From: Guillardia theta CCMP2712
Lineage: Eukaryota > Protista > Cryptophyta
Length of the DNA stretch: 64,000 nucleotides
Assembly (NCBI RefSeq): GCF_000315625.1
Contig: NW_005434667.1
Location: 467,160 to 531,159, forward strand
Reading direction: 5' to 3'
The notes below the pieces were generated by a model that worked only from the letters and a program-made list of their open reading frames with translations, had not been told where the DNA came from and made no database searches. Made by a program: the position numbers and the translations under genes. Shown piece by piece: positions 40,874-52,520 of this stretch (position 1 is the first letter of the stretch; each line of letters opens with the position of its first letter).

Positions 40874-42310
40874 ATGATGACATTGGGCACAAACAGCATC
40901 ACACGAGCACTCCGTTGGTGGTTTTACCATCATGGATTGTTCTGTGCCAAACACCCACGTCTTGCCGCTGTCCTCGGAATGATAGTCATGCTTGTTAGCG
41001 CATTAGGGTTCTTCAATCCTCGAGGGCAGCCTTTCGTCTTTGACTTTCCGGGAATCATGCAAGACTTTGTGAAGTTTGTACGACAATACGCAGTCCCGCG
41101 CTGGCTCCTTGGAGCCTACATGCTTCTTGCGACGTACCTGGCATGGGCAGCAGACGTGGGTGTGAAATACTCCACGTTGAAGAGAGTGAAATCAGCGCTG
41201 GGGCTCAACACAACGTCTCACAGGTGCGTGAGAGGAAGGAAAATCCCATGGAATCCTTCGTTCCGTGCTCGTTTCACAGTGGGGATATGCGGAGTGCTGA
41301 CGGTCTTCTCCTCCATTCTGCTTGCTGGAGCTGTCTCGAACTCTCTCCTCGGGGTGAACATGGGTATGATCCTGGATGAGTTGCCGTTCCTTGTCGTCTT
41401 CATGGGGGTTCAGGGAGTCTTCAGCCTCCTCGATGCATCTACGAGCACCTACAACGAGTCTGAGCTGAGGAGAGGGCAAGTCTATGTGGTAGACAGAGTC
41501 AACCAGATCGCGCTGGCGACGTCCCTCACGGGTCCAGAGGAACTGGTGATGTCGCTGAGCAAGGCGCTGGTCGCTCTGTTCGTCGTCTGGCCCCTCTCGA
41601 CGCTCATGGGGCAGCAATGCATCGCCGACTTCTCTGTGCATGCCGGGCTCGCGGTGCTCTTCAAGTGTCTTCTTCAGATGTCAGTGTTCGCCTCGGTCGT
41701 GCAGGCCTTGCTCCCTGAGTGGGACCCCGCGAGGAAGCAGAACCGTCCCTTGCTCACGCCGGAGATGAAGTGCCGGGTCTGCTTTGAGTTCTCTCAAGAC
41801 CTGCGGAGGTGTCCCTGCAGGTGCACGGGGAGCGTCGGGTACATCCATCCAGTCTGCTTCCAGCAGTGGTTCGAGACCAAGAAGAGCATGCGCTGTGAGC
41901 TCTGCCACGTGATCTTCAACGTCCGCATGCTGCCAACGTCTGTGATGACCAACATCCAAACCATGGAGTCCCTCGTCGCGGAGCTGCTTCCTCCGCTCTC
42001 GAAGAGGCTCGCCCTCTACCTCCTCCTCTCCATCCCCATCAGCTGCAACAAGCTCGGCTTCATGGTTGTCGACGCTGTCTCGGAGAACTTCCGCCTGCTC
42101 GTTGGCACTGCTCACAGCAATGCGGCATACATGCTGACTCTGATCGCCTGCTCCCTCCCCGCCGTCGCCGTCGCCCTCCTGGAAGTTGTACCGCGCGTTC
42201 TGACCGACTGGCATCGTCGCCATCGTGTGATGCACTGGGATGGGCCGATAGACGGGATGTCAGACTCGGATTCAGATGATGAATACTGCAACCAAGAAGC
42301 GAGGAGATAG
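40874..42310 (+). CDS. Sterol-sensing domain (SCAP/HMGCR/NPC1 type) + RING-CH (MARCH-type) membrane E3 ligase, intronless
   Basis: FYHHGLFCAKHP. SSD helices GICGVLTVFSSILLA, DELPFLVVFMGVQGVFSL and IADFSVHAGLAVLFKCLLQMSVF. C4HC3 ring CRVC..CPCRCTGSVGYIHPVCFQQW..CELC followed by two TM helices. Confidence 0.88.
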   Translation: MMTLGTNSITRALRWWFYHHGLFCAKHPRLAAVLGMIVMLVSALGFFNPRGQPFVFDFPGIMQDFVKFVRQYAVPRWLLGAYMLLATYLAWAADVGVKYSTLKRVKSALGLNTTSHRCVRGRKIPWNPSFRARFTVGICGVLTVFSSILLAGAVSNSLLGVNMGMILDELPFLVVFMGVQGVFSLLDASTSTYNESELRRGQVYVVDRVNQIALATSLTGPEELVMSLSKALVALFVVWPLSTLMGQQCIADFSVHAGLAVLFKCLLQMSVFASVVQALLPEWDPARKQNRPLLTPEMKCRVCFEFSQDLRRCPCRCTGSVGYIHPVCFQQWFETKKSMRCELCHVIFNVRMLPTSVMTNIQTMESLVAELLPPLSKRLALYLLLSIPISCNKLGFMVVDAVSENFRLLVGTAHSNAAYMLTLIACSLPAVAVALLEVVPRVLTDWHRRHRVMHWDGPIDGMSDSDSDDEYCNQEARR

Positions 42311-42583: not shown

Positions 42584-45500
42584 TCACGCTGCCAGGTCGA
42601 TAAGAGCTGAGCGAGTCATCATATGTTTGACCAACATCTGAAAAGGCGTCATCGAGCTCCGGTATCCTCCCCTCCCCTATCCTCCCCAGCTCTTCCTGCA
42701 TTCTCCTCCTCTTCCTCTCACCTGTGGAAGAAGTGGCGAATCAGCGCTCATGTTGACCAGCCTCCCCGCCTCCTTCACTCCGCAGCTCCATCCTCTCTCC
42801 TGCCATCAGGTGAGGCGGCGGCAGCAGGAGAGCTGTCCTCACCTTGCTGTCCCACTGCAGGCCCTCCGCCCGACACCGATCCTTGATGTCGTAGGAGTTG
42901 CGAATCAAGATTCTTGACTTCCCCTCCCCGCCCTCCTCCTCGAGGATGATGGCGTACGGAAGCTTGTTTGTCTTGCTCTTGGAGGAGGAGACTGCCTTGT
43001 GAGAAGAGCCGGCGATGGCCTCGAGGACCAAGTCTGCTGTCACCTCCTCCTCCCTCGACATGTTCAGTATCGCAGCAGCATGCGAGCGAGTGCAGGTCCA
43101 CGCCTGCGCCGTCTCGTTCCAGGCCATCCCGAGCTCGCGAAGGAAGCGCTTGAGCCCGTAGCAGCGATCCACAAGCACCTGCGGTGTGAGGCGATCAATG
43201 GCGGCGAGACGGGAGGGTGAGGAGGAGAAGGAGGACCGTGCTGTTCTCGATGCGACATCGGGGCATGCTGATTGGTTGAGGAGAGTCTGAACGCGAGGAG
43301 ACGGAGGATACTGTGGAAGAGTAAGTTGGTAGCAAAGTTTGAGGAGGATGATAGAGGCTTTTGTCAGCATCACTCACAGTCTTTGGGGAGGGACATGCGC
43401 TCGAGGCCCTCGAGCAGCTCCTCGAGCGAGAGATTCTCCAGCAGCTCCTCCTCTTTCGTCTTCGTCTCCTCCTCGCTGTTGCTCGAGCACTTGGAGTCCT
43501 CTCCCGCCATGCCCCCATGGGCCATCGCACCCGCCTCCTCTGCCCCCCTCATTCTTCTCCTCATCTCCTCCATCGGCAGCGCCCAGGCCTTCTCCTCCTG
43601 CCGCCATCGGAACCCTGCCATCCGGAGCCGCTCCTTCATGTTGTATCCGTTGAACACCAGCAGCTCGTCCCCGCACACCCGAACGTCAACTTTCCTCCCC
43701 TTCCTCTCATCCTTCACTCCGCTCAACTTGCCGGAGCGTTCCGCTGCCTTCCTGGCTCGCGCGAGCATGGACAGAACCTTGTGCTCAGTGATGGAGGAGG
43801 AGGAGGCGCAGGGATCTTCTGTGAGAGCTCCGCTGACGAAATCTGTGCATATGAGCTTCTTGATCTGTTCAAAAAGTTAGCTCTTCCTCCCTCCCTCCTC
43901 TTCCCTCCTCCTCATCGCCCCTCCTCCTGGTCACAAGTTCATCTCACCTCGGTGGAGTTTGCCTTCAGCACGATGTCTCCCTCCTCTGCTCTGCTCGTGT
44001 TGACCAGGTTGACCAGCTCCAGGGCTGGAGCAAGCGAGGGCGCGAATCTCATGTGGATCATCCCCTCCTCCTCCTCCTCCTCTGTCTTGAGAATGCTACA
44101 GAGAGACCTTAAACCCTGTCTCCCCCCTTCGTTCCCTTCCCTCTCCTGCTGGTGCTGGTGCTCATCCTTCTCTTCCTTCTTGTCCGTCTCGCATCCTTCG
44201 GTGTACTCGTACAACATGTCGAGAATCAGCTCGGCGTTGAGATCAACGAGCGAGTCGATGCCAACCTGCCAAGACGCCAGAGTGAAACTCTGCTATCCCC
44301 TTCTTCCGCTCCCCTCCTCTCCTTTGTTCCTCTCCCTTCCCCCCGCATATCCCTTCCCCACTTCCTTTCTCCACTCCGCCCTTCTCCCACAGCTTGATGT
44401 TTGTTCTCACAGCGAGCAAGCCCTCTATCCCATCCCAACAGTCTTCAGTCGACTACGTTGGTTCGTCCCTCTCCTCATCCTTACCATCCTCTCGAACTCT
44501 TTGACTTCTTTTTTCCACAATCCGGAAGTCTCGTCGAGCTCGAAGAAACAGGATCGCAAACTCTCTTCAAACGTCTCTGCGTTGCTGATCTGAACATCCC
44601 GATGATCCACCTGACAACTCGATCAACCTCCTCCTCCTCCTCCTCCTCCTCCTCCTCTCACCTTCCAGCGAGGAGAAGGTATGGAAGCGATCAGAGTTCG
44701 GGCATGCTGGAATTTCGTCTTTGAAGAGATCAGACCCAGCACAGACAAGTTGCAAACTTGTTTCCTCGCTCCCCCCGCCCTCTCACTCCTCTCCTCCTCC
44801 TCACCGTCTCTTCCTCTCCCTCCACTTCTTCGCCTTTGACTTCTCGTCTCCAGACGTTCTCCTCCACATTCAAGACGAAACCTGCGAGCTTGAGGCGGAA
44901 CTTGTCGCCTGCAGGACCACGAGGTGAGGAGGAGAGGAGGAGGAGGAGGAGAGGAGGAGGGGAGGTGAGGAGGAAGGGAGGAGGAGGAAGGGAGGAGGAG
45001 GAAGGGAGGAGGAGGAGTGGTACCTCGAGCGAACTTGTCAAGGGGCCGGACGAGCACTATGTCGTTCTCCTCCTCGTGAAATTCCATGCGGCGATCTGGT
45101 GCTGGATGAGAAAAGGAACGGGAAGAGTAGGAGGAGGAGTTGTGGGGATGGCACTTCACCTAGTGGAGGGAGAACCTCCTTCGCATTATCTTGGTACATC
45201 TGCATCATCGTGAACAAGAACAAGAACAAGAACAAGAACAAGAACAAGAACAAGAGCAAGAGCAAGAGCAAGAGCAAGAGCAAGTTCTTTCTTCTCTCAA
45301 GCTCATTCCTCTCACCTTGACGAAGAGGATCTCAAGCATTTCTTGGACCTTCTCTCTTGTCACGTCCTTCTCACTCGCATTGAAGAATTCCGCGATTCTC
45401 GACAGCTCGGCTGTCCATCCCCTACTTGCCACGTCGTAGGAGAAACCTGCCGAGGATAAACAAAAGCAAAATCAGAGGGTGGAAAAAGATGTGAATGGAA

Positions 45501-47261
45501 AACAGGAGATGGCATAGCAACAAGAGAGAATGAGAAGGAGAAGAAGAAGTAGAAAGTGAAGGCAAAGAGCGAGCGACGAGGAAGAGCGGAGAGGAAAGAG
45601 AGGAGGGAAGTGGAGGTATGAAGATATTCCAGCATGAGAGGTTTGCGCGATTCTTTACCTCCTCTCCTCACCAGCTCCCACATTGGTTGACATTTTCTCA
45701 GGATACAATGGGAGGAGTTGAAGTAAACAGAAACTGTCTTCCTCTTCAGCTCCTCTCTTTCCATCCTGCACCACCTGTCAGAAGAATGAAGACGGAGAGA
45801 AGAGAGAGAGGAAACGACAGAAAGATATTTGATAGGCAGAGGAGAGGAGAAGAGCGGAGAGGAGAGGAGAGGAGAGGAGAGGAGAGGAGAGGAGAGGAGA
45901 GGAGAGGAGAGGAGAGGAGAGGAGAGGAGAGGAGAGGAGAGGAGAGGAGAGGAGAGGAGAGGAGAGGAGAGGAGAGGAGAGGGGGCAGGATGCAGGTCAC
46001 CTGCTCATTTGGCCAGCAGACCCCCTGCTTTTGAGTCCTTTACGCTGAATTCAGTTGGACCTCCTCTTCTCCCCTCCCCTCCCCTTCACCGCTTCCTCCC
46101 CGCCCCCCCTCCCCCTCCTCTTTCCCGCTCCCCACCTTTGACTGCGGATGCCCATTCCTTCATCTTCTCCTTTGCCATCTTCAGCCGAGCAAGCCTTGCA
46201 CGCTCCTGCTCCTCTTCTTCACTTCCTCCTCCCTCCACCTCCCTCCTCCACCTTCATCATGTTCCCTTGCGCTACCGCAAGAACTTCCGAGGAGGAGGAA
46301 GACGAGGAAGTGGCAGGAGCCAGTTCTTCGTCGAGTTGCTTCTCGAAAGTCTCTCGAGGGATGGGTCGCTACGTGCTTCGTCAGAAGTACACCCTCTCTC
46401 CTCCTCCCTCCTCTCCTCCTCCTCCTCCCTCCCTCTCCTCCTCCTCTCCTTCCCCTCGTCTGACTTTTTCATCAACTCTCTCACCTCAGGAGACTGAAAG
46501 TTGGCACAGTCTGGATCGAGACAACGCTGTCAACAGCAGATCAGCTTCCTTTCCTTCCTCTTCCTTCCTCCCCTCCTCTCTCAGGAGCACCTGCTTCCAT
46601 ACTCCTCGTGATAGGTCGCAGACAATCTGATCCCAGGCAAACACGTCACATCACTTCCTCTCCCCTTCCCCTTTGATCACCTCTCCTTCCCTCGCTCTCC
46701 CCGTCCTCCTCCTCCTCTCCTCCTCCTCCTCTTACAGAGATCCTGTTGGACTTGTGCTGTCTTCCGATCGCCTCGCAGAATCTGTTCCCCAGCAGAGAGA
46801 AAGTTATCCGCATGCTTGTCCGGTTCAGCGCCCACTGCTGCACCCAGGCCCCGCTCCGAACCTCGCATACGTAGCTGAAAACAGGCGTCAGGAGGAGGAG
46901 GAGAGGAGCAGCGGGTTAGGAGATGGAGGAGGGCAAGGAGGCGGAGGAGCGATGGATAGATGGATGGGATAGAAGGAAAGAGAGAGACGGCAGGATAGAG
47001 GATGAGGGAGGGAGGGAGGGAGGGAGGGAGGAAGGGGAGGGAGGGAGGAGAGGCAGTTGGAGAGGGAGGGAGTACCGGTCCAGGTCGGGGAAAGGAGATT
47101 TAGAGGAGAAACTTTCTCGTCTGCTGGTGTCGCTGGCTGAGATTGTCGTGAAGTTGAGGGTCAAAGTCGCCTGAACGCCACGTAAGCCTCCTCCTCCTCC
47201 TGCACCAACCTTCTGCCTCCTCCCCTCCTCTTTCTAGCTCCTGTCGCATCCCCCCTACCCC

Positions 47262-47292
<31 letters not shown>

Positions 47293-49168
47293 CACCTTCT
47301 TGGTCTTGTTCGCATCCTCATCCTCCAGCAGGTGATCCAGCTGCGAGGTGAAGCAGATAAGAGAATGCTGCAGCAGGAGCCGTTAGCTCTGAACCTCCTG
47401 CTCCTGCTCCTCGTTCACCATAAAGACGTTCTCCTCCTCGTCTCTTCCTCCCCCGACCGAAGGGTGCAGCGAAGAGAACATGAGCTTCATGAACGCGTTG
47501 GAGTGAAGATCAGGATGCCACTTGTGCGGGTGCTCGCGCTGAGATCTCTGCATCCCATGACAATCATTTCCTCCTCCCTCTTTGGCCTTCCCTGCTGCTT
47601 TCTCTAGGCCAGCATCCCCCCTCCTCTACTTCCCTCTCCTCCCCAGCTCTTTTCTTGCCCCTTGTTCCTCTACTGACCTCGAACGTCCTCGTCTTGCCGA
47701 GCTTGGAGGAATAGAGGATGCGAAAGCACCGATTGCGAGTGTAGACCCCGAGGTCAACGCAAGACTTCACGTCCTGACACACACGTTAAAATCCCTCCTC
47801 CTCCTCCTCCTCCCCCTCCCCTTCCCCCTTCTCCTGCTTCAACTCCAGTAGCAGCAGCAGCATACTGCAACTGCTGCTGCTGCTGCTCTTCCCGGACGCA
47901 TACTGCTCCTCATCCCCCTTACAGCTAACCCTGACCTCCAGCACCTCGGGAAGAAGTTCGACGAAGTGACGGACGAAGGCACCCGCGTGCGAGTTGTCCT
48001 TGAACGCAACGTTGGCAACAATGAGATGCCGCGAGAACTTCACGTCTGTGCAACTGTCCAGCTCCAGCACCTGCAGGACAGCACAAGAAACTTAGCAAGT
48101 GAGGGGTAGGGGTAGGGGGAGGATGAGTAAGACTGTGATGGTGAGGTGTAGCGAGCAGGCCAGCTCTTTCTCACCTGGATCTGTTTGTCAAATTCCTTAT
48201 ATCTCGCCTGCAAAGCCGGTTGAAGCTCCTCCAGCATCTTGTCCACCCTGCTGTTCCCCAGCTGATGCGCCTCCGTCACGTTGTCCCCAGCAGAGATCGG
48301 AAACTCCAGATCGAAGTAGAGCCGGCACGGCGAACCTTCACGGATGATCTCAGCGAAATGTCGTCCGCTCGGGTCCATCTTCTTGTATCTTCTCCAGAAC
48401 CCCTGCCATCCACTTCATCCACATCCTTTCCTCTCCCCCTCCCTTCCTCTCCTCCTCCCAACTCACCCTGTAAGTAGCTGCCACGTACTGCTTGGCTCCT
48501 GTGTTCTTCTTGTCCTGCGCATAGACCTGTAGCCCGAGCGAAGGACGAGCGTCCGCGAACTTGAAGGCATCAGCTTGCGTTGCGAACACTTCGAAGACGT
48601 AGTCTGCATGATTCACATCCTTGACCTCCTCGAGAACTTTCATCCCTCGTCCTCGCTGCGGAGAAAGGAAGGAAGTAGAGCTGGAGGAATCGACGGCTCT
48701 TGTGGGGCTCGTGATCTCCTCCGTCCTCGCCTGCTTGCTTCTTGGCACAAGATTGTCGCCGAAGAGTGCCGCATTCCTTGACCGCAGTTCCTGGCTGCTG
48801 AACAAATCCTTGGCATCCTGTTTGCTCTCAAAGTCCGCCAGTCGTTCCACCAGGTCTGCCTTGTTACCCCTCGTATTGAGTCCCCTCTCCCTGAGCGCTC
48901 TGTGCAGCTCAGATAGCTTCATCCTCTCAAACACCGCTCGGTCCTCCGCCGATTGGCTCGGGTTGAAATTGCTGTCAGACGACCTCGTAAAGTCGTTGCT
49001 CAGCGAACTGTCGGATCTCTTGACATTCATCATGGTCCCTCCCCTCAGCCTGAACACGGGAGAGGGGTGTTCCTTGCAGGCAAAGGGGCACAAAGTCGAT
49101 TGCATCACCTGACAAGAAACCTTGCACAACAGTACGACGAACAAAACATTAGCCAACGCACGAACCAT
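42584..49168 (-). CDS. PRIMPOL: PrimPol-like primase-polymerase with N-terminal signal peptide and SAP domain, Zn finger, and C-terminal tandem DUF5710-like repeats (many exons; the C-terminal part could be a separate gene)
   Basis: SAP: KLSELHRALRERGLNTRGNKADLVERL. AEP motifs: EIIREGSPCRLYFDLEF, KFSRHLI, VDLGVYTRNRCFRILYSSKLGK. ZnF: RFCEAIGRQHKSN..RCLDPDC. Downstream repeats such as YNMKERLRMAGFRWRQEEKAW. Confidence 0.88.
45212..45284. repeat. (CAAGAA)n/(CAAGAG)n intronic microsatellite
   Basis: Compound hexanucleotide array. Confidence 0.95.
45838..45981. repeat. (GGAGA)n intronic microsatellite
   Basis: Pentanucleotide array, the same unit as 5827-5970 on the opposite strand. Confidence 0.95.
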
Positions 49169-49539
49169 CTTCAAAATGAACTTCTGTCAACCCATTTGCC
49201 CGTTTCTGTCTGACAAAACGAGAACATCAGACAGGAACGAGTACGAAAACACATGGGAAGCTCTTGTGACTGCACACTCGCCTTCAAACAAGGAACTTGA
49301 TACCCCTCATGAACATCTCGATACCCACTACTACAACCGACATCTCACGAGCAACATCTTCTTCTCCTCTCCTCCACGCCCTTCCATGCCTTGTATATCG
49401 CCATCATCCATGTCTCCCTCCCTCCCTCCCTCCCTCCCATACTTTCGCCGCCTCCGCCTCCCCCTTCCCCATTTTTGTTCGAATTTGAACTTCGCACGCC
49501 AACACACGCGGGCGGTTACAGTACGTTAATTCCCCAACA

Positions 49540-52520
49540 ATGGCCGTTTCGAACGTAACGGTATTCCAAAGGATCGGAGAGAACATGCAGCGGGGGACGC
49601 AAGAGGGAGAGAGGATGGGAGGGGAGGGGGAGGAGGAGAAGGGGAGAGGGAGAGACGAGGCCATGAAGGTCGAAGGAGAAGATAAGATGGAGGAGGATGA
49701 GGACGAGGAGATCAGCTTCAAGTATGTCTACATCCCCTGCGACGATGGCAAGGAGATCCAGGAGTGCGTCATGCGGGCTAAGAAGAGCCAGTCGATGCAG
49801 TGCATGCTCGGTGAGTTTCATGCAGGGAACTATGTCGAACATGCACGCGTGCTGAGATGCTTACCTGCCCTGTCAGACTATCTCAGGCCTTACTTCGCGG
49901 AGGCAGCCAAGATAAAGTCGGAGGAGCAGAGGAGGAAACTCAAAGTACGTGCTCCTACCGCAGCTCCCTCCCCTCGCTCACTAGCATGGCAGGAGAACAT
50001 TTCTGCTGAGCTTGCGAAGAACGCAGCTAAGGTCTCCGACTACGCCGTCTGGTCGATCTGACGAAGAGCAGGGAGGCATGAAGTCCGACGACATATCAGC
50101 CACCATGATCGACAGCATGACCGAGAGTCAGTTTGTATGCTCGCCGAGGCTCTCCTCCGGTGCAGAACTTGACGATCCGACATGCAGGTTGACATCGTTC
50201 CTCTCATCCCAGCCGTAGCTGCCTGCAAGTGTGCCGGACTTGCTTGACCTTAGAGCTCACTGACCCTCTTCAACGTAGCTGGATGTCCGTGACCATGTAC
50301 GTCGACGACAAGGGATCAGCCAAGGTGAGTCAGAGTCCGTTCAGCCTCCCTCCTCCTCCTTCCTCGGTCTTCCTCCTTCTCCCTCAGTCTTCCTCCTACT
50401 CCCACGGTCGTTTCTTTCCCTCCCTGTTACCCGTGGAAGCAAAGGTTCCTCCCTCACCTCTCAATGTGTGCCAGGAGCTCCCGGTGAATGCTCGGGCCAC
50501 TGCCATCGTGTCCATGGCAGGGGGAAGCGTATCGGTGAGTGGGAGGAGGAAGAGGAAGGGCCGTAGGGAGGGAGAGGGAGGGGTACGAGGAGGGAGAGGG
50601 AGGGGTACGAGGAGGGAAAAGGGGGAAGCACAATGGAGCAAGAGTACCGCCTACATGCCGTAGCAGCCCGGATGTGACCGTACGCGAGTCGAGCAGGTGC
50701 TGGGAGATGCGTTCGTAGCGCGAGCATACGACAATGAGGCAGAGGATCTTGTAAGGCATGACTTCCTCCTCGAGGAACTGGCGGCTGACGCCCCTTGGTA
50801 ATGGAAGGGGGAACAGAGGAGAGGGGAGGGGAAAGAAAGGAGGGGAAGGGAGGGGAAGGGAGGGGAAGGGAGGGAAGGTGAGGGAAAGGGAAATGGAGGG
50901 AGGGGAGGGGAGGGGAGGATTGGCTGGTGCTCACTTTGCCAAGGCTGCGAGAGGCATGGAGAGTGAAGCTGATCGTCGAGGGAAACCGGGACAGCAAGGG
51001 GAAAGAGGATGAACACTTAGATGAAGCTCGAATTGTGTCTAAGGTGAAGAGGAGGAGGAGGAGGAGGAGGAGGAGGAGGAGGAGGAGGAGGATGAGGATG
51101 ATGATGATGAGGAGGAGTAAAGCAGTTCCAGGTGCTAGAGGATGGCTTTCCTTTCGTGCCCCCCCTGCATCAACCAGTCCACCAGGACGCTCGCAAGGAG
51201 GCAGCTGAGAAGATCCGAGCAAAAGGCAACGAGTACTTCAAGCAGGGCAGGTAGGAAAGGACCAAATCGCAGCAGTTGCTGACTTTCTTGCCCTTCCCCT
51301 GCCCCTGCCCCTGCCCCTGCACCTTCCCCTCCCTGCTCCACTAATGACCTGCTCCTGCTCAGTTTTGAGGATGCTCTCTTTGAATACTACAAATCCGTTC
51401 GCTACCTCAGCATCATGCCAGCTGTCTTGGACGACAAAGTTGTACAAGTTGAATTCCATGAAGCATCCTGATAGCAGGGCAGGCGACTGCTTCGCTGGTT
51501 TCGGCGCTGTCAAACGCTGCAGCTTGCTGGCTGAAGCTCGAGAAGTACAAATTGGTGATCTCGAGTACTCCCTCCCTCCTCCCTCCTCCCTCTTACCCTA
51601 GGAGGGAGCAGCAGGGAGCTGCTTCCTCCTCTTGCCCGTCTGCCCTCCTGCCTGCTATCGACTCGATTGTCTCGCATTCCCGCTCTTCTTTCTTGCTTGA
51701 CCGGCTCACACTCAACGTCGGCAGTGTGACAAACTCTGCTCCAACACCCTCCAGCTGGAACCGAAGAACGTGAAGGCGCTTTTCAGGTAGCTTCTCAGCT
51801 TCTCAGCTTCTCAGCTTCTCAGCATCTCAGCTTCTCAGCTACCTCCTCCTCTCCTCCTCTCCCTCCCCTGCTCACGGATTCCTGGTTATGTTCTGCTTAC
51901 CTATTGGTCGCTCCTGCTTTCTTCAGCATTACCCACTTCCTTGTGCCCCTGACCTCCTCCCTCCTCCCTCCCCTGCTTCTCTCTCACTGGCTCGCAGGAA
52001 GGGCATGGCTCTTCGTGGGATGCAGCAGTGGCAAGAAGCTCTCACAGCTCTAGAGCAGGTGGGCAGGGGAGGATGAAGGAGGAGGGCAGGGGGGGAGGGA
52101 AAGGAGGCGCAAGGAGGGCAGGGGGGGAGGGAAAGGAGGCGCAAGGAGGGCTGAAAGCTGCCTCAGGCGGCAAGTCTGAACCCCTCAGATGCTGCGGTGG
52201 CAGCGGAGCGAGCGAAGGCTGAGAAGGTGAGGGAGGGAGGGAGGGAGGGAGGGAGGGAGGGAGGGAGGGAGGGAGGGAATGTGGAAGGGAAGATGGGGAA
52301 GGGGAGGGAGGGACAGACGGAGGTGATGAAACGGACTGGGCAGGATGTGAAGAAACATCTGTACGGGTGGTGAGAGGGTACTGGAGGATACCAAACGAGC
52401 GGAAGCGAGAGAGGAAGGGTCATGAAATCAAGAACAGCACAAGAACGATGAAGGTGGTCAGGTGAGAGACGATGACGTCGAAGTGAAGGACAGTAGATGG
52501 GAAGGCAGGGTGCCATGAAT
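49540..52520 (+). CDS. Protein with a DUF3846-like N-terminal domain and a C-terminal TPR domain (multi-exon, 3' end approximate)
   Basis: YVYIPCD, MYVDDKGSAK-ELPVNARAT and VLGDAFVAR. TPR helices AEKIRAKGNEYFKQG, LQLEPKNVKALFR-KGMAL and LNPSDAAVAAE. Confidence 0.7.
51790..51840. repeat. (CTTCTCAG)n intronic tandem repeat
   Basis: About six 8-bp units directly after a splice donor. Confidence 0.85.

Follow-up and report, generated by a model that had tools for sequence, protein, structure and literature searches.

The gene that we analyse here, GUITHDRAFT_101365 of Guillardia theta CCMP2712, is a hypothetical protein in the deposited annotation and lies on the minus strand of the window, by which we mean the whole stretch of 64,000 nucleotides that was analysed. 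Our model of it, put together from spliced contigs and, for the 3' half, from the deposited model, has 23 exons running from 49168 to 42584 on the minus strand and encodes 1223 amino acids. Judged by its motifs the product is a catalytically intact PrimPol with predicted activity, PrimPol being a primase-polymerase that lets DNA synthesis resume after stalling. The preliminary description of the locus had ended the gene at 46490 and covered its first 548 amino acids; that position is merely the end of the zinc-finger exon, and the gene continues to 42584. Its parts are these:

49169 to 49341, minus strand: minimum 5' UTR, from X1 record 3 and X2 record 8
48467 to 49168, minus strand: exon 1 (amino acids 1-234), which codes for leader, SAP domain and the initial strands of AEP; from the open reading frame, with the donor set by joint 48401/48466 in X1 and X2
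49112 to 49168, minus strand: signal-peptide-like segment (amino acids 1-19), with n-region MVR, a 12-residue hydrophobic core and c-region KVSC
49067 to 49102, minus strand: block Q-x2-L-C-x3-C-x2-H (amino acids 23-34) in the spacer, from alignment conservation
49037 to 49054, minus strand: FRLRGG (amino acids 39-44), the end of the leader, from the ten-sequence alignment
49028 to 49033, minus strand: M46-M47, the Met codons that follow M1 in frame, placed two residues past GG in the context ACCATGA; they could start a leaderless isoform
48830 to 48931, minus strand: SAP DNA-binding domain (amino acids 80-113), from Pfam PF02037
48175 to 48402, minus strand: exon 2, with AEP motif I (joints 48401/48466 and 48067/48172; motif aligned to human 5L2X)
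47945 to 48070, minus strand: exon 3, with AEP motif II (joint 47772/47944)
47678 to 47773, minus strand: exon 4, with AEP motif III (joints and alignment to 5L2X)
47076 to 47547, minus strand: exons 5-7 (47547-47419, 47367-47296 and 47170-47076), the linker between AEP and zinc finger (joints 47367/47419 and 46874/47076)
46736 to 46874, minus strand: exon 8, with the C-x6-H half of the zinc finger (weak Pfam PF03121 match)
46591 to 46626, minus strand: micro-exon of 36 nt and 12 amino acids (placed by joint 46526/46591 and by the positions recorded for X1 contig 1)
46485 to 46526, minus strand: exon 10, which completes the zinc finger with C-x4-C (joints 46526/46591 and 46368/46485)
42584 to 46368, minus strand: 13 further exons coding for the C-terminal extension, with the stop at 42584, from the exact rebuild of GUITHDRAFT_101365

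Eight introns appear as direct joints in spliced contigs of the transcript runs X1 and X2, and each of them has GT..AG ends when read on the minus strand. The positions recorded for X1 contig 1 imply a ninth, 46735-46627, and make the micro-exon visible as well, while the intron 47295-47171 lies outside the listed joints and is based on its splice sites (GT..AG) and the deposited model. The deposited protein (P0152) could be rebuilt exactly from the window, with an identical N-terminus. The transcripts place the exon 3 donor 9 nt upstream of the site in the NCBI model, from which the 36-nt micro-exon is also missing, and X1 contig 1 runs 403 nt past 46257. The raw RNA run X8 put 3 reads on the gene, too few for strand, transcription start or expression level, and we rejected run X4 as expression evidence because it contains the introns and is thus genomic DNA. 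An Rfam scan of the window gave no matches.

That the leader-coding part is present in mRNA follows from two transcript contigs, which span 48867-49211 (X2 record 8) and 49069-49341 (X1 record 3). Since an in-frame stop lies upstream at 49189-49187, M1 is the first in-frame AUG, and its context is strong (A at -3, G at +4). The preliminary description had named a start downstream of the leader as one finding that would undo its reading; the leader lies inside the transcript contigs.

The AEP core is shared with human PrimPol (CCDC111; PDB 5L2X and 7JK1), to which motifs I-III align, with E=1.7e-25 for 5L2X. Motif I, LYFDLEF (DxE; amino acids 262-268, 48321-48301, minus strand), aligns to the human LYFDLEF, and motif II, KFSRHLIV (SxH; 48040-48017, minus strand), and motif III, VDLGVYTRNRCFR (hD then RNR/FR; 47758-47720, minus strand), align to 5L2X. 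Common to both enzymes too is a UL52-type C-H-C-C zinc finger, here C-x6-H...C-x4-C across 46786-46506 on the minus strand with C-x6-H at 46786-46754. With the micro-exon included all four ligands are present and 19 residues separate the His from the next Cys, and the human finger has the same spacing. Pfam gave no AEP match on single short exons, because it models the UL52 part only; its PF03121 model matches weakly on the single exon 8 of G. theta and with E=5.2e-07 in the ortholog P0003. The SAP domain scores above the Pfam threshold (PF02037, E=4.7e-10, 39.3 bits against a gathering cutoff of 23.9), and AlphaFold predicts two helices there with pLDDT above 90. The order first proposed for this protein, a SAP domain ahead of an intact AEP core and zinc finger, was thus recovered in full on the minus strand.

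Human PrimPol has neither a hydrophobic N-terminal leader nor a SAP domain, whereas the G. theta protein has both, and where the human enzyme ends in short RPA-binding motifs the G. theta protein carries an extension of about 670 amino acids. This is built of repeated modules of the form Y-x-x-K-D/E-R-x-R-x-x-G-F/L-x-W, which occur in P0003 as well. We rejected DUF5710 (PF18974) as an assignment for these repeats, its matches (E=0.02-0.11, 12.6-14.8 bits) falling below the cutoff of 26.5. An atlas score of about 0.77 for the repeats is a lead only, and we filed them under no family. The human enzyme is nuclear and mitochondrial, while the compartment of the G. theta enzyme is a prediction. The mature G. 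theta protein contains no clear NLS; KKKRLRL-like clusters are present in relatives. The best non-cryptophyte matches are land-plant PrimPols such as At5g52800, at 33-36% identity and E of about 1e-45, but these have no SAP domain in precomputed Pfam annotation and their N-termini are not hydrophobic.

Nine relatives, Hanusia phi and eight others, share the plan of the G. theta protein, and eight of the nine have the SAP domain, which precomputed Pfam annotation places in none of the other PrimPols that we recovered. At the N-terminus a basic n-region leads into a hydrophobic core and on to -3/-1 sites, and this layout is conserved. Its maximum mean hydropathy is 2.85 in G. theta, against 0.97 +/- 0.56 in a sample of 37 non-cryptophyte PrimPols, none of which has a hydrophobic start, and mean hydropathy is 2.2-3.25 across all ten cryptophyte-type N-termini. 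This agrees with two earlier statements, that the protein begins like an ER signal peptide (we find amino acids 1-19 hydrophobic, and conserved in relatives) and that canonical PrimPol lacks both this feature and SAP. The open reading frame of Hanusia has 56 further residues ahead of the hydrophobic segment, an extension that is probably an ORF-calling artefact.

Behind the hydrophobic start AlphaFold shows a disordered spacer of 25 amino acids that ends in FRLRGG. In the spacer conservation reaches 90% or more at Q23, L26, C27 and C31 (alignment A1, ten sequences). A folded mini-domain around C-x3-C-x2-H found no support, the AlphaFold pLDDT there being below 50. At the end of the leader R42, G43 and G44 are invariant in the ten sequences and R40 is nearly so. 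FRLRGG agrees with the ubiquitin tail LRLRGG at five of six positions, as the preliminary description had recognised in calling it a mimic, and LRGG begins 21 residues past the predicted cleavage site. In ubiquitin itself a fold precedes the LRGG tail, whereas FRLRGG follows a disordered region with no ubiquitin fold. No second signal-like start followed by RGG turned up elsewhere in the window.

In a tree of 47 PrimPols the cryptophyte-type sequences formed one clade (SH-aLRT 100), and plants and cryptophytes had no supported union. The backbone was without resolution, and the set contained no red-algal and no plastid-lacking cryptist sequence, so that the tree is silent on host versus red-algal origin. 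The comparison with red-algal PrimPol that had been suggested thus yielded the clade and no more, since no red-algal PrimPol turned up among the sequences recovered. A leaderless host paralog, also suggested for checking, was not found: searches over lengths of 226-2774 amino acids gave no second Guillardia PrimPol.

Where would such a leader send the protein? Under the published rule for cryptophytes, a non-aromatic residue at +1 of the cleaved signal peptide predicts periplastid retention rather than stromal delivery (PMC4494062, PMC5443833), and F or L at +1 is the stromal signature (PMC4494062). As periplastid type we counted a spacer that begins with any residue but F, Y, W or L. We assigned cleavage sites by the -3/-1 rule alone, which gives C15|K and C19|Q in G. 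theta, with Q at position 20. The +1 residue is therefore Q or K, as it is in Hanusia, and the non-aromatic residue first reported for G. theta stands. It does not extend to the family: at the best -3/-1 site +1 is C in P0170 and D in P0151, but F in P0005, P0148, P0205 and P0007 and L in P0004 and P0168, the sites in these six being of the types ALA|FP, AAA|FP, ALT|FP, SLA|LP and AMT|LP. The heterokont half of the original targeting argument does not apply, the source being a cryptophyte.

Our main reading, to which we give about an even chance, is that this is a host-nuclear, leader-bearing PrimPol with SAP domain and repeats that is predicted to serve the DNA of the nucleomorph, the relict nucleus of the engulfed red alga. 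Cryptophytes would have acquired the bipartite-type import leader, the SAP domain and the long C-terminal repeat region. In the route that we infer, the signal peptide would direct the protein, as it is being made, to the ER lumen around the complex plastid, and the short, disordered, lysine-bearing spacer would then carry it across the second membrane by way of the ERAD-derived SELMA translocon. The protein would be retained in the periplastid compartment, as we propose because the G. theta spacer begins with a non-aromatic residue; from there it would enter the nucleomorph and prime synthesis on its three small linear chromosomes, or reprime it at lesions. The same destination was suggested in the preliminary description, and the Q or K at +1, the conserved leader and the SAP domain speak for it. 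The disagreement of the +1 residues among orthologs, predicted as they are from sequence, counts against it, as do the missing clear NLS in the mature G. theta protein, the occurrence of SAP domains outside nuclei and the small number of reads in X8.

There are precedents for such traffic. Cryptophyte nucleomorphs have genes for parts of MCM and GINS and none for a DNA polymerase; a 2017 study of the G. theta cell cycle called explicitly for the host-encoded nucleomorph replication enzymes to be identified (PMC5443833). A case within the species is nucleus-encoded H2A (GuiTh_1001763), which has a signal peptide, a transit-peptide-like sequence and a non-aromatic +1 residue and localises to the nucleomorph (PMC5443833). 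In Bigelowiella natans POLH, POLD, RFC1 and RPA1 are likewise host-nucleus-encoded proteins of DNA synthesis and damage tolerance with N-terminal leaders, and GFP has shown that they reach the nucleomorph (PMC5635652). That set differs in its green endosymbiont, targeting rules and enzyme families, and it has been localised where the G. theta PrimPol is predicted.

The same bipartite leader could instead cross all four membranes, so that the enzyme would reprime damaged DNA in the plastid stroma, with SAP binding the nucleoid. SAP domains are not confined to nuclei, the plastid nucleoid protein pTAC3 having one. An F or L followed by P stands at the best -3/-1 site in six of nine relatives, and the F/L-type clade has leaders of about 85 amino acids that are rich in R, L, A, P and S and resemble transit peptides. 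However, neither candidate +1 position in G. theta and Hanusia holds an aromatic residue or Leu, and although discussion of plant PrimPol has treated it as a candidate for the organelles, organelle DNA copy number is unchanged in Arabidopsis PrimPol mutants (PMC6554949). For G. theta we consider a stromal enzyme unlikely.

What then is the role of the RGG? The simplest view of the invariant RGG, which lies where the leader meets the mature protein, is that it serves for processing or recognition. SELMA import involves ubiquitination and a periplastid deubiquitinase (the ptDUP system), and a deubiquitinase-like protease could conceivably cut the leader after GG. A bolder form of the nucleomorph reading, which we regard as distinctly unlikely, takes the sole G. 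theta PrimPol to be dedicated to the nucleomorph, possibly as its main primase, with a periplastid protease specific for ubiquitin tails cutting at RGG and so retaining the protein whatever its +1 residue. If this were true, removal of the leader at RGG would reconcile the F/L and the Q/K orthologs.

One gene might also serve two destinations, the long form going to the complex plastid and a leaderless form begun at M46 or M47, through leaky scanning, reinitiation or a downstream transcription start, going to the host nucleus or the mitochondrion. This would explain why a single PrimPol gene was found, and alternative starts are a known means of dual targeting in algae with complex plastids (PMC4494062). 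The placement of M46-M47 in its ACCATGA context is suggestive, as are the five uATGs of the 5' UTR (short uORFs of 2-27 codons), and Hanusia has a Met after GG too. But that Met is absent from P0004 and P0007, M1 stands in its own strong context, and in the transcript contigs no transcript end maps between 49168 and 49033, an interval that X2 record 8 passes through unbroken. Nor need the host have a PrimPol at all, the enzyme having been lost from many eukaryotes. On balance we think a second product of this kind very unlikely.

That the leader has no targeting role, being a membrane anchor, an annotation artefact or the start of an ordinary nuclear or mitochondrial PrimPol, is highly improbable: AlphaFold does draw one long helix over residues 2-26, and metagenome gene callers do begin the near-identical fragments P0002 and P0274 at M46, but these fragments read into intron 1, so that they are calls on genomic contigs and no evidence on the start site, the transcribed leader stays in frame and shows conserved residues across ten sequences that are only 18-72% identical in that region, the hydrophobic core is just 12 residues long with small residues at -3 and -1 behind it, and the segment, having few basic residues, is not like a mitochondrial presequence.

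We return to the predicted nucleomorph-serving PrimPol and to what it may mean. The literature that we searched contained nothing on a Guillardia PrimPol or the locus tag GUITHDRAFT_101365, no description of a SAP-PrimPol-repeat architecture and nothing that links LRGG to periplastid leaders. For the copying and repair of cryptophyte nucleomorph DNA this gene offers a concrete, clonable candidate with a leader of 44 residues. Moreover, RGG is invariant in the cryptophyte PrimPols, and the Q-x2-L-C-x3-C block nearly so, while the +1 residue varies between periplastid and stromal types. With RGG fixed and +1 variable, the family is a natural experiment on which signal sets the compartment.

The Guillardia theta PrimPol is a variant within a known enzyme family, annotated yet uncharacterised. 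A search with a long relative as query retrieved it as GUITHDRAFT_101365 of strain CCMP2712 (1214 aa), annotated as a hypothetical protein and named DNA-directed primase/polymerase in UniRef, with an N-terminus identical to the window reading; a literature search found no publication on Guillardia PrimPol or on this locus tag. The window yields an exact rebuild of the deposited model in 22 exons (49168-42584), and transcripts amend it twice. Exon 3 stops 9 nt sooner, the model donor lying 9 nt too far downstream (47936-47944), and a 36-nt micro-exon inside the zinc finger (46626-46591), absent from the model, is present in transcripts. With the micro-exon included, the stretch between the zinc-finger His and the Cys that follows it counts 19 residues, and the spacing in human PrimPol is likewise 19 residues. 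As corrected by transcripts, the gene has 23 exons and encodes 1223 aa. The preliminary description had placed PrimPol at 46490-49168, an interval that covers only the first 548 aa rather than the whole gene. The parts of the protein are:

aa 1-19: basic n-region, 12-residue hydrophobic core, small residues at -3 and -1 (hydropathy, -3/-1 rule)
aa 20-44: spacer ending FRLRGG, disordered, pLDDT below 50 (AlphaFold model)
aa 80-113: SAP domain (PF02037; Pfam E=4.7e-10; AlphaFold pLDDT above 90)
from about aa 190: AEP core, motifs I, II and III aligned
aa 513-548: UL52-type zinc finger (Pfam, ligands in sequence)
aa about 550-1223: extension with repeated Y-x-x-K-D/E-R-x-R-x-x-G-F/L-x-W modules

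The SAP domain, intact AEP core and zinc finger described previously are thus all present, AEP motifs I-III being common to this protein and human PrimPol (5L2X, E=1.7e-25). Tandem repeats at 42584-45450 form the C-terminal exons of PrimPol itself rather than a gene of their own; such repeats also end a 1585-aa relative (P0003), and the Pfam profile DUF5710 matches them only below threshold.

Spliced Logan contigs from two sequencing runs, X1 and X2, show a multi-exon minus-strand gene across the region, with contig joints at eight introns, all GT..AG on that strand. The introns considered are:

48466-48403, minus, contig joint
48174-48071, minus, contig joint
47944-47774, minus, contig joint
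47677-47548, minus, contig joint
47418-47368, minus, contig joint
47075-46875, minus, contig joint
46590-46527, minus, contig joint
46484-46369, minus, contig joint
46735-46627, minus, ninth intron, from record positions of X1 contig 1
47295-47171, minus, splice sites and deposited model

Another run, X4, retains the PrimPol introns and so is genomic DNA. Introns carry long purine/pyrimidine and triplet tandem repeats (45838-45982, 45212-45284, 47262-47290, 47004-47072, 46393-46457; AGAGG x29, GAACAA x12, CTG x10, plus GAGG and CCT tracts), and the long EERRG/SSPLL open reading frames there are repeat artefacts.

Transcript contigs at 48867-49211 (X2) and 49069-49341 (X1) place the leader-coding stretch in the mRNA. 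The ATG at 49168, with A at -3 and G at +4, is the first in-frame start because an in-frame stop lies at 49189-49187; upstream of it, the minimum 5' UTR includes five further ATGs, each opening a short uORF. A highly expressed plus-strand neighbour starts by 49578 at the latest (contigs X2 49578-49809; X1 49657-49809, depth 86), at most about 240 bp from this UTR (interval 49342-49580), and such close spacing means that the two genes probably have a common divergent promoter region; across 49390-49519 neither X1 nor X2 showed any transcript depth. On the other side, at 40874-42310, lies a gene with sterol-sensing and RING-CH domains, which also adjoins PrimPol on an environmental cryptophyte contig (L001, 1-1549 and 3001-7758), in a different relative orientation.

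An exhaustive HMMER search using exon 1 as query, together with word-index searches, gathered nine further sequences with the same protein plan, one from Hanusia phi (78% identity), the others from unlabelled assemblies and metagenomes. Aligning all ten shows that R42, G43 and G44 are invariant and that conservation at Q23, L26, C27, C31 and R40 reaches 90% or more, even though outside Hanusia the relatives share just 18-36% overall identity with G. theta. Mean hydropathy of the N-terminal core is 2.2-3.25 in 10/10, against 0.97 +/- 0.56 in 37 plant, animal, stramenopile and fungal PrimPols. SAP occurs in 8/9 relatives and is absent from the precomputed Pfam column of every non-cryptophyte PrimPol recovered. 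Given this shared plan, the conserved residues and the absence from other PrimPols, sequence comparison indicates that leader and SAP are additions particular to this lineage and conserved within it, and that neither stems from an error in a single gene model, which bears out their description as foreign to canonical PrimPol.

Within the otherwise variable leader, a Q-x2-L-C-x3-C-x2-H block (49067-49102) is conserved across cryptophyte PrimPols; possible roles are a metal or disulfide element and a recognition site specific to PrimPol. A further Cys ends the hydrophobic core. The Hanusia transcriptome ORF has residues 1-56 upstream of its hydrophobic segment, without a stop, and its true start is uncertain.

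No second Guillardia-named PrimPol was returned over lengths 226-2774 aa, so the leaderless paralog once envisaged did not appear; as the search needs shared 5-residue words, the case for a single gene is moderate. M46-M47, two residues past GG in good start context, make a leaderless isoform possible, and the post-GG Met is missing from some relatives. In a tree of 47 PrimPols the cryptophyte-type sequences form one clade (SH-aLRT 100, long stem), but the backbone lacks resolution and no red-algal PrimPol was found for the intended comparison.

Where does the protein go? In cryptophytes and diatoms an aromatic residue or Leu starting the transit-peptide-like part permits stromal entry, and with any other first residue the protein is retained in the periplastid compartment (PMC4494062; likewise PMC5443833). 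With cleavage sites assigned by the -3/-1 rule alone, the +1 residues are:

Q or K: G. theta, Hanusia (best sites)
C: P0170
D: P0151
F: P0005, P0148, P0205, P0007
L: P0004, P0168

The predicted call for G. theta is periplastid, and here the non-Phe +1 residue proposed earlier holds. Its orthologs are not uniform, a real weakness: F in four and L in two would suit the main rival destination, the plastid stroma, against which stands Q or K in G. theta and Hanusia. We nevertheless favour the nucleomorph, a role that is plausible but unproven and to which we give an even chance, for the following reasons. As an enzyme, PrimPol is of the eukaryotic nuclear type. The nucleomorph genomes of cryptophytes lack any DNA polymerase gene (PMC5443833). 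Bigelowiella imports POLD, POLH, RFC1 and RPA1, all encoded by the host, into its nucleomorph (PMC5635652), whereas for G. theta PrimPol the destination is predicted.

FRLRGG equals the ubiquitin tail at 5/6 positions, yet no ubiquitin fold precedes it in the AlphaFold model. Cutting after GG by a deubiquitinase-like enzyme would be a hypothetical processing step, and a literature search found no publication joining LRGG with periplastid targeting. The invariance of RGG at the leader/mature junction nonetheless argues for a function, and PrimPol offers a family in which RGG is fixed while the +1 residue varies.
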